This document shows positions 27,241 to 28,612 of a stretch of 40,014 nt of DNA, in pieces. The notes under the pieces are model-generated. The model searched no databases. It worked only from the letters and a program-made list of their open reading frames with translations, and was not told where the DNA came from. A program made the position numbers and the translations under genes. Numbering within the stretch: position 1 is the first letter of the stretch; each line of letters begins with the position of its first letter. Origin of the DNA: Octopus bimaculoides (Eukaryota); assembly GCF_001194135.2 (NCBI RefSeq), contig NC_068983.1:37188667-37228680 (forward strand), in the 5' to 3' direction.

Positions 27241-27261
27241 AGATGACGAGGCATTTCGCTA
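27241..27261 (-). other. 21-nt 28S rRNA fragment: the downstream flank of the R2 insertion site
   Basis: Minus strand TAGCGAAATGCCTCGTCATCT versus 28S TAGCCAAATGCCTCGTCATCT, a 20/21 match exactly at the R2 3' end. The match stops there and no other rDNA is visible in the window. Confidence 0.9.
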
Positions 27262-28612
27262 GTTATAACAGACTTTTTGTCCTTTTGCCTATTTTTATAG
27301 TAGGTGGTCCCACTTATGCCTCGTCATTAGCCACACTCGCAGGCCGGCACCAGGCACCACAGGCACCGATTGGGAGTCCATGCACCTCCACCGGCCGATC
27401 AAACTCCTGCAACACCAATTGTATGAGCAGCCGGTACTTGTGCATTTTCCCAAGAGATGTCTCTCCCAAGGCATCTCCTTGCTCCAATCGGACGGTCACA
27501 TCGATGACTACTACCTTCTCCGGACGGCTAAAGACTAAGTCTGGAATCAGCCTGGAGCTTCCTACAATGTAAGAAGGCTCCACATTGACACTCCAACCGT
27601 AGTCAACAGCTTCTTTCGCTACAAGGCTACATATTTCGTTGTGCCTGGCGAGTCGTAGTCTTTTAAGAGCACCACAGACTCCCCTCGGGACCCACGTGTC
27701 AGAGTTTCTCGGGTAGGATATACATTGGAGCGAACCTTGAGAAGACCCAAGTAACACCCTTCCGTAATCCTAGCCGGCCTATTTATCCAACTATTACCAA
27801 TTGCATCCCCACGGTACGCCGCCGCACAAGCACCATGAACCAGCTGGGCCGCCCATCTATGGCAGTGCACCAGCCAGAAGTCAGTAAGCGAAGGTTACGG
27901 CGGATGACGCATTTAGGTATTAGTCTCACCATCTGATGAAGACTTAACCCGCCATCACGCCGGCTGCAATACAGGAAGGAAGAGGAAGTCTCGGCAGATA
28001 ATATTGCTGCAGCAAGAGGAATTTCTGTCGGGGTTTCAGCGGAGCCCTGCATATCTTATTGATGTCCAGTGACACCTGCTCCACTGAATCTAAAGAAAAT
28101 TCCCGACTAGAGTTCAAATTCCACGTGGGAACATTAAGACCTAGGTAGGATATCCTCTCCTCCGGTTTTACTTCTTTTAAAGCGACACCATCGACGGATG
28201 GAGAACCACGCACACTTACCGACATTAAGTCCCAGTCCGACTGCGAGGTAGAACTCCAAGCATCTATCAATAAGAGCCTGGAGACCACCGCGCGACACAG
28301 CGACTAAGACCAAGTCGACCGCGTACGCGATTCCATCCACTCGGATCCCCTCAGCACGCAACTCCCCGCTGCCCTATAACACATCTAACAGCGGGTTGGT
28401 TGCGATGTTGAAGAGGATCGGTGAGAACGCATCCCCTTGCCTAACACCCCGGCGAATCTCAATGGGTTCACTGACTTGCCCACCGACTGAGAATCTGATA
28501 GTACTTCCTTCAGAGATCCCCTCCACGAGCGCTATAACTTGCTCGTGGAACCCAAGTCTCCGCAGTCCCGCATACACCAACGAGTGCGAGACTGTACCGA
28601 AGGCCATTCCCA
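27262..28612 (-). mobile_element. R2-clade non-LTR retrotransposon: 5'-truncated, frameshifted, with internal deletions
   Basis: AFGTVSH, RGVRQGDAFSPILFN, AYAVD (YADD), GLNVGKC, YLGL, APLKPRQK..YYLPRL, RDGGL, SWI..LLKVRSNVYPTRETLTRG, RLARHNEI, EP..PDLV..VIDVTV..KMHKY and GACGAW. Confidence 0.92.

Follow-up and report, generated by a model that had tools for sequence, protein, structure and literature searches.

R2 3' ends and the rRNA that flanks them

Published work on the R2 retrotransposon states that neither the formation of the native RNA 3' end nor the presence of downstream 28S ribosomal RNA (rRNA) on the natural template has been established, and the RNA is expected to run into 28S (PMC12222951, PMC11194090). 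The 3' homology pairs with the nicked primer strand of the target over four to five nucleotides (nt), and R2Tg requires it (PMC12222951). The present analysis concerns an R2 copy of Octopus bimaculoides in which the downstream 28S sequence has an antisense partner inside the element. The copy lies in a 40,014-nt stretch of genomic DNA (assembly GCF_001194135.2, contig NC_068983.1, positions 37,188,667 to 37,228,680 of the forward strand), which is called the window below. The open-access literature yielded no account of an R2 3' untranslated region (UTR) with an antisense tract of downstream 28S. 28S positions are counted from the first base after the element (+1).

One parallel is found at the opposite end of the element, in the P1 stem of the R2 5' hepatitis delta virus (HDV)-like ribozyme (PMC3774820). 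There, as would be the case for the octopus tract, a segment of the element is complementary to flanking 28S and pairs with it in the 28S/R2 co-transcript. P1 also resembles the role proposed below for the tract, in that 28S nucleotides are left on the R2 RNA and are later able to anneal to the target. The P1 stem has about 7 bp, lies at the 5' junction and belongs to a catalytic fold whose cleavage has been shown (PMC3774820), whereas the predicted octopus pairing lies at the 3' junction, comprises 12 bp (up to ~60 bp in a copy from Octopus sinensis) and has no known catalytic fold. The 3' homology (Luan & Eickbush 1996, as reported in PMC12222951) places the same downstream 28S nucleotides on R2 RNA as in octopus, and the dispersed octopus copies with 28S tails fit RNAs that extend into 28S in this way. 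The homology pairs with nicked target DNA (PMC12222951), whereas the octopus tail has an antisense partner within its own UTR.

Some fish R2 families also carry 28S-like sequences in their 3' UTR (Kojima et al. 2016, PMC5035012), which, as in octopus, represent rDNA captured in a UTR and inherited by a lineage. The fish sequences are sense copies of 28S taken from the upstream side of the site, and a shifted 5' junction is associated with them, whereas the octopus copy is inverted, comes from downstream of the site and is predicted to form a hairpin with the flank. In A-clade R2, the last ~65 nt of the 3' UTR form a pseudoknot-hinge-stem core (PMC12180492, PMC12222951), and the A-clade protein binds these 3'-terminal ~65 nt (PMC12180492). 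Among R2 proteins, those of the A clade are the nearest to the octopus protein. The 3' ends of R2 type recovered from octopus number eight, none of them within an intact rDNA unit: those of the window, L001, L002 (an O. bimaculoides locus) and L003 (an O. sinensis locus), together with four in L006. Each of the eight has a terminal hairpin followed by A-rich sequence, of similar overall length. The antisense tract is lineage-specific and sits 5' of this core, not within it.

An inverted copy of a nearby flank with a short spacer, the arrangement observed in octopus, is also produced by snap-back (fold-back) synthesis and template jumping of reverse transcriptases, and by inverted templated insertions during end joining. 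Such snap-back or template-jump products are normally one-off scars, whereas the octopus product appears to have been inherited by an active lineage. Template jumping by the R2 protein has been noted (PMC12222951, PMC12180492).

The inverted repeat in Octopus bimaculoides

Read in element sense (minus strand), the window carries ATGACGAGGCAT in the R2 UTR (27327-27316) and ATGCCTCGTCAT in the 28S tail (27254-27243), which form a perfect 12-nt inverted repeat with arms 61 nt apart. A first-pass annotation of the window had proposed this antisense copy of the downstream flank from the sequence alone. Both arms are present, and shuffles speak strongly against chance. The same annotation had the R2 3' end followed directly by 28S, which is correct: the tail matches the canonical flank at 20 of 21 positions (27261-27241), ends 2 nt past the 12-bp stem formed by the arms and gives way to unrelated DNA.

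With one mismatch tolerated, the 12-mer pattern occurs in the 40-kb window at the two arms only (0.16 matches expected), and two matches were obtained in 0/100 shuffles. The duplex between the 69-nt R2 3' end and 28S +1..+25 has an energy of -23.8 kcal/mol; shuffled duplexes reach -9.8 +/- 2.5 kcal/mol, and 0/1000 were as good (p < 0.001). The RNA fold of 27332-27241 has an energy of -30.0 kcal/mol (z = -5.35), and the UTR folded without the 28S tail has -13.2 kcal/mol (z = -1.7). The 12-bp stem is found in both the minimum free energy (MFE) and the centroid fold of 27332-27241. Folding of the 3' UTR together with 28S had been named as a check in the earlier annotation, and the predicted stem agrees with its suggestion that the 12-mer may pair with the downstream rRNA in the co-transcript. 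The complementarity between the 12-mer and 28S in the window is far beyond chance.

A chance match or an assembly artefact in a gap-rich draft scaffold is scarcely conceivable in view of these statistics. There are 12 runs of N in the window (for example 25799-26455, 29191-29348 and 30354-31074), but none lies inside the R2 copy or within 1.8 kb on the 3' side of the feature, and the same motif is present in a different assembly of another species.

Two smaller motifs that had been pointed out in this region are coincidental. The hairpin CCUAU-AAAA-AUAGG was a misreading of CCUACUAUAAAAAUAGG, which allows at most a 4-bp CUAU/AUAG stem; neither the MFE nor the centroid fold contains this stem, and seven relatives do not conserve it. 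The pentamer GGCUA does precede the 12-mer (27332-27328), but its reading as the complement of TAGCC, the supposed first five target bases, was rejected, as the tail of the window starts TAGCG and L003 has CACTA where the window has GGCTA. GGC comes from the open reading frame (ORF) side of a deletion junction and only CTA is common to L003; therefore, GGCUA is accidental.

The window locus holds a dead, dispersed R2 copy that does not reside in rDNA. Between 27314 and 28607, the ORF is broken into pieces in several frames, and Pfam RVT_1 is matched at profile positions 78-205 only (E = 5.6e-11). The best PDB matches are R2 proteins, namely 9nl2 (1e-43), 9nl3 and 9dou (R2Tg), followed by 8gh6/8ibw (R2Bm), and the A-clade matches carry a second matched stretch. 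The partial profile coverage and the matches to R2 structures therefore indicate an R2 that starts inside the reverse transcriptase (RT). The closest proteins to the window ORF are those of Octopus vulgaris, O. bimaculoides and O. sinensis (78-81% identity), and Octopus proteins annotated as reverse transcriptase share 78-81% of residues with the 147-aa ORF at the C terminus. No Pfam model matched the putative endonuclease region of the remnant, where an endonuclease-type PD..D..K motif (IPDLV...VIDVTV...KY) was seen by eye only, and the CCHC region is frameshifted. The remnant is truncated near 28607-28615, so that its 5' end is absent, and its ORF has several frameshifts and has lost the last ~33 codons through an internal deletion. 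Neither a 5' HDV-like ribozyme nor an intact single ORF is present, and residence in an rDNA unit is not seen, with a 21-nt 28S tail and no 28S upstream. No Rfam family, including any ribozyme, matched within the window, and large subunit (LSU) rRNA gave no match at the gathering score in the window or L001-L003, with partial matches in L001 only. A target-site duplication or poly(A) around the window copy was looked for and not found. The canonical 28S-site 3' junction, the element followed by TAGCCAAATGCCTCGTCATC, is present in the window, L001, L002 and L003. The remnant has a GC content of 51.8%, compared with 38.6% for the window.

The ORF had been described as cut short just before the 12-mer. 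It does end there (...ANDEA*), and the cause is a deletion of ~238 nt relative to L003. Compared with L002, homology extends to 27330 (...GCGAGTGTGGC, which matches the L002 ORF exactly) and picks up again at 27314 (AGTGGGACCACC...). Compared with L003, two BLAST segments meet at window position 27330, which corresponds to both L003 5872 and L003 6111, and the window copy therefore lacks ~238 nt. The deletion spans ~33 codons at the end of the ORF and ~150 nt at the start of the UTR, with its junction at 27330|27331, 3 nt upstream of the 12-mer. It took place either after the insertion or before it, and spared only CTA and the 12-mer of a longer tract that is preserved in L003.

The Octopus sinensis copy and the longer inverted tract

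The proximity of the 12-mer to the deletion junction, at a distance of 3 nt, would fit a local one-off scar, in which the 12-mer is filler made with the deletion, either by a template switch, as the first-pass annotation had considered, or by a snap-back templated insertion in end joining. The 15 nt TAATGACGAGGCATA at the junction resemble such filler, as they are unmatched in L001 and L002. This explanation is highly improbable in the light of L003, which carries CTAATGACGAGGTAT at 6111-6125 in an undeleted 3' UTR of ~222 nt (context ...GTCACTAATGACGAGGTATGAGTGAGACCGCCCAC...), within a longer antisense tract. The homologous motif ATGACGAGGTAT is identical to the window 12-mer at 11/12 positions, and the one difference, C>T, keeps a G.U pair. 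It lies 57 nt from the 28S junction in L003 and 54 nt at the same place in the window, and sits at the same distance from the conserved 3' hairpin in both. The flanks of the two copies are unrelated, their 5' ends differ and their 28S tails measure ~15 nt in L003 and 21 nt in the window; therefore, they are independent insertions. The motif is thus not confined to the window locus, as an independent insertion has both the 11/12 match and the preceding CTA in an undeleted UTR, and the 12-mer is not a scar of the window deletion. Junction filler was rejected on the same grounds.

Over the last 350 nt of the ORF, the synonymous divergence (dS) between the window and L003 is 0.49 and the non-synonymous divergence (dN) is 0.12, with a dN/dS of 0.25 (Fisher p = 2e-6 for synonymous versus non-synonymous differences); the two ORFs differ at 36% of synonymous sites. 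This ratio is that of purifying selection and indicates that most of the divergence arose in active elements and not by pseudogene decay, and that the tract therefore passed through active elements. CTA and the 12-mer are identical at 14/15 positions, whereas the rest of the 3' module is identical at 39/61 (Fisher p = 0.02). Very probably, one octopus R2 lineage inherited an inverted 28S tract in its 3' UTR, immediately 5' of a terminal module of ~55 nt. The L003 copy is a 5'-truncated R2 (4302 onward) that begins ~60 nt after an unrelated RT ORF of the long interspersed nuclear element (LINE) type (3688-4239), and may represent a nested insertion or a chimera.

The alignment with L003 places the 12-mer at the loop-proximal end of a ~95-nt tract that reads as complementary to 28S +8..+101, and the extent of this tract beyond about +32 is probable. 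Local alignment of the L003 UTR with the reverse complement of 28S +8..+101 gives p = 0.006 with mononucleotide and 0.017 with dinucleotide shuffles. The thermodynamic signal is far stronger: the RNA duplex between L003 6020-6125 and 28S +1..+110 has an energy of -85.5 kcal/mol (shuffles -45.4 +/- 5.7; z = -7.0). Without the 12-mer, the energy is -67.8 kcal/mol (shuffles -39.9 +/- 4.8; z = -5.8), and with a majority-corrected 28S it is -88.4 kcal/mol (shuffles -45.6 +/- 5.5; z = -7.8). The paired blocks of 12, 8, 9, 15 and 11 bp are collinear (Table 1), and relative to 28S the tract has +20..+24 and +67..+90 deleted and 18 nt inserted. The full fold of the L003 UTR plus 28S is a long hairpin with these pairs, in which the conserved 3' module takes the position of the "loop". 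A sense-oriented origin from 28S +20..+50 was also considered because the native rRNA hairpin CGUCA...UGACG looks alike in both orientations, and was rejected, as local alignment gives p = 0.84 and 0.145 for L003 in sense.

Compared with a perfect antisense copy, 8-9 of the 11-12 changes in the L003 helices are sense-strand C>U or A>G, the only types of substitution that preserve a pair, here as G.U. Simulated random substitutions leave ~3 G.U pairs, and 9 were reached in 0/300 simulations. Mutational bias was rejected as the cause of this excess, since the L003-specific ORF changes show no such bias, with 6/22 of these types (Fisher p = 0.01-0.017 versus the tract). Overall, the wobble-preservation tests give p about 0.004-0.017 with n = 2 copies. 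Judged from these base changes, the pattern favours constraint on a putative RNA-RNA pairing in the sense transcript.

The tract could also be inherited but neutral, which is a credible possibility short of probable. In that case, the 3' UTR of a master element received an inverted 28S fragment through ancestral snap-back or fold-back copying; the fragment has since been hitch-hiking and decaying, the 12-mer survives intact in the window by luck, and its pairing plays no part. Its absence from 6/8 octopus R2-type 3' ends, its large indels and ~17-18% substitution, which are close to the neutral expectation for dS/2, and the modest significance of the 12-mer conservation (p about 0.02) all agree with neutrality. 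In addition, aberrant R2 integration and junction products are known to propagate (PMC3774820). Less easily squared with neutrality are the G.U-preserving transitions (8-9/11-12), which 0/300 simulations matched and for which the ORF of the same copy is unbiased, and the survival of the motif in two sublineages with ORFs that have diverged at 36% of synonymous sites.

Proposed pairing in the co-transcript and distribution of the tract

On balance, we lean towards an inherited inverted copy of the target flank, probably a snap-back product, which would pair with the 28S tail of the co-transcript. That the pairing of the tract with 28S is functional or under selection falls slightly short of probable. 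As to the origin, target-primed reverse transcription or break repair may have carried the bottom strand ~55 nt into R2, whereupon the strand snapped back, copied itself from +8 outward and rejoined the element. The product, formed in an ancestral active element, would then have become a transposing master. The arrangement of antisense +101..+8, ~55 nt of R2 3' end and sense +1 onward is the expected outcome of snap-back copying.

With R2 transcribed within the 28S precursor, the tract would pair with 28S from +8 onward in the co-transcript. The resulting helix would bracket the terminal 3' module, which the protein would bind if octopus R2 resembles A-clade R2 in this respect (PMC12180492), and would leave +1..+7, which anneals to the nicked target strand, single-stranded. 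The likeliest role would then be to shield the 28S tail on the R2 RNA from 3' trimming, or to make a double-stranded signal for 3'-end cleavage; the fold-back would define or protect the 3' end by blocking exonucleases or by offering a substrate to a double-strand-specific nuclease. The R2 RNA could thereby bring a 28S tail into target-primed reverse transcription. The window tail ends at +21, two bases past the 12-bp stem, which fits such end protection. The tract would thus be a 3' counterpart of the use of flanking rRNA by the 5' ribozyme, with a fold-back that clamps the 3' module, frees +1..+7 and defines or protects the RNA 3' end. This proposal is tentative and rather unlikely as it stands, and the specific role in tail protection or 3'-end formation is somewhat more doubtful still.

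A different use of the same complementarity would be RNA-DNA targeting, in which the tract pairs with the top strand of the target at +8 onward while the 28S tail of the RNA pairs with the nicked bottom strand, so that the target is clamped and the template positioned. The 12-mer in the RNA is identical to the bottom-strand primer segment and hence complementary to the top strand, the tract begins at +8 and leaves +1..+7 for primer pairing, and A-clade and Bombyx structures show second-strand DNA bases in contact with the template RNA close to the pseudoknot (PMC12180492). Even so, targeting is very unlikely: intramolecular RNA-RNA pairing with the tail is favoured kinetically and energetically, most R2 lineages hit the same site without such a tract, and the G.U-preserving changes point to RNA-RNA pairing, as G.T wobble is weaker in a hybrid, though possible.

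Several results weigh against functional pairing of the tract with the 28S tail. Alignment by itself is marginal for the tract beyond the 12-mer and the adjacent GTCACTA (p = 0.07-0.15). The substitution level of ~17-18% and the indels of 5, 18 and 24 nt are near neutral decay over dS/2. The test for wobble bias uses one sequence and a structure-guided alignment, and true covariation is impossible because 28S is invariant. The L003 tail ends at about +15 although the tract passes +100, which does not fit an end protected by the stem, and a double-stranded RNA of ~100 bp might just as well be a burden to the element, as a substrate for editing or small-RNA pathways. The motif is present in two copies only, both dead and outside rDNA, and the other six octopus R2-type 3' ends examined have no antisense motif.

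If the fold-back reading is true, the tract would be the first natural clue to how R2 RNA 3' ends arise. The octopus lineage offers a natural experiment on whether the R2 template carries downstream rRNA. Engineered R2 gene-insertion systems rely on a few nucleotides of 3' homology, and a self-clamping tail might be designed to stabilise or position template RNAs. Should the tract be no more than a passively inherited scar, it would remain a clear example of an active retrotransposon in which a snap-back product became fixed, and would show that a long hairpin spanning the 3' junction is tolerated by R2.

The tract is specific to one lineage and is not general to octopus R2. It is found in 2/8 of the 3' ends (window and L003), and 28S complementarity in five control octopus R2-type UTRs is at chance level (z = -0.05 to -1.9). 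The six 3' ends without the tract show that it is not needed for R2 retrotransposition in general. Comparable pairing in another lineage was considered and rejected: the MFE folds of L001 and L002 pair a segment before the hairpin with 28S +1..+13, at energies no better than chance (p = 0.27; z = -0.05 to -0.65). ORF identity among the four sequenced lineages is 77-82%, roughly equidistant, and the tract may equally be ancestral and lost elsewhere, or derived. Protein searches returned six relatives; the distant R2-like contigs L004, L005 and L007 stop short of the 28S junction, and four loci widened to 20 kb gave no 3' ends beyond the four in L006. Motif-plus-junction patterns had no match in metagenome, genome and viral collections, which do not hold animal genomes, so that absence was expected.

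The terminal module downstream of the tract is shared more widely. Its hairpin is present in 8/8 3' ends with the consensus (A/U)GUGGG-ACCR-CCCAC(U/A), which has 6 pairs and a closing pair that covaries A-U/U-A. The A-rich tail after the hairpin is likewise found in 8/8, and the small 3' stems vary by copy. Over the whole module (hairpin and A-rich tail, ~55 nt), the window is 64% identical to L003. The coordinates of all features are collected in Table 1.

Table 1. Positions of features at the R2 3' end in the window and in related octopus loci
Feature	Position	Strand	Remarks
R2 ORF remnant	window 27331..28607	-	C-terminal half of RT through putative endonuclease domain; ORF frames, Pfam and PDB matches
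CTA	window 27328..27330	-	common to L003; antisense of 28S +25..+27 after shared 5-nt deletion; right edge of deletion
Antisense arm ATGACGAGGCAT	window 27316..27327	-	complementary to 28S +8..+19
Conserved 3' hairpin AGUGGG-ACCA-CCUACU	window 27299..27314	-	8/8 octopus R2-type 3' ends
A-rich tail of 3' terminal module	window 27262..27298	-	last R2 base 27262
28S tail TAGCGAAATGCCTCGTCATCT	window 27241..27261	-	+1..+21, 20/21 versus canonical flank; then unrelated DNA
Sense arm ATGCCTCGTCAT	window 27243..27254	-	28S +8..+19
Homologous motif ATGACGAGGTAT	L003 6114-6125		11/12 identical to window 12-mer
Helix, 12 bp	L003 6114-6125		predicted with 28S +8..+19
Helix, 8 bp	L003 6106-6113		predicted with 28S +25..+32
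Helix, 9 bp	L003 6096-6104		predicted with 28S +34..+42
Helix, 15 bp	L003 6052-6066		predicted with 28S +52..+66
Helix, 11 bp	L003 6041-6051		predicted with 28S +91..+101
28S tail	L003 6183-~6198
28S tail	L002 5887-~5985
28S tail	L001 5914 to at least 6100
28S tails	L006 ~2251-2253, ~7642-7645

All recovered octopus R2-type copies lie outside intact rDNA and yet are 28S-tailed, with tails of about 3, 4, 15, 21, 100 and at least 190 nt. These variable tails look like traces of template RNAs that had extended into 28S to different extents before they were inserted elsewhere, which bears on how the native R2 RNA 3' end is made. In the window, the 7-mer AGTGGGA (element sense) occurs at 27308-27314, in the 5' arm of the conserved hairpin, and again at 27232-27238, 2 nt beyond the 28S tail (CATCTGGAGTGGGATTGCC); the second copy may be due to chance or may be a trace of template switching at the 3' end of the insertion.

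Some junctions in the related loci differ from the canonical one. At L006 10816-10950, an R2-type 3' end (...GAGTTTCGCTAAGAAGG) is joined to 28S-like sequence from about +38 (TGAACGGATC...GATTCCCACTGTCCC) and not from +1, which may represent a shifted junction or a different rDNA-specific lineage. L006 also holds two different R2-type 3' ends, at 7593-7760 and 9187-9360, with identical non-28S sequence after them (CTTGATGGTTATGACCCACGAACCTTGCAA.GGGT...), which suggests that insertion recurred at a single site of another repeat or that a composite unit was duplicated. A sub-threshold Rfam match to LSU rRNA (35 bits, model positions 2195-2324) at L001 5821-5958 crosses the R2/28S junction and covers the ~93 nt of R2 3' UTR upstream of it, and is either real 28S-like sequence or an alignment artefact.

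The two O. vulgaris R2 clusters are ~30 kb apart, and the same 811-aa product with faint Myb-like matches lies beside both (L008 1-8075, minus strand; L011 1-3776, plus strand). A segmental or inverted duplication with many R2-type elements is one possible explanation for this region. Elsewhere in the window, the minus strand carries an intact single-exon ORF of 677 aa at 32573-34606 with RING, B-box and NHL-repeat matches (TRIM-NHL-like), which is probably a host gene or retrogene.

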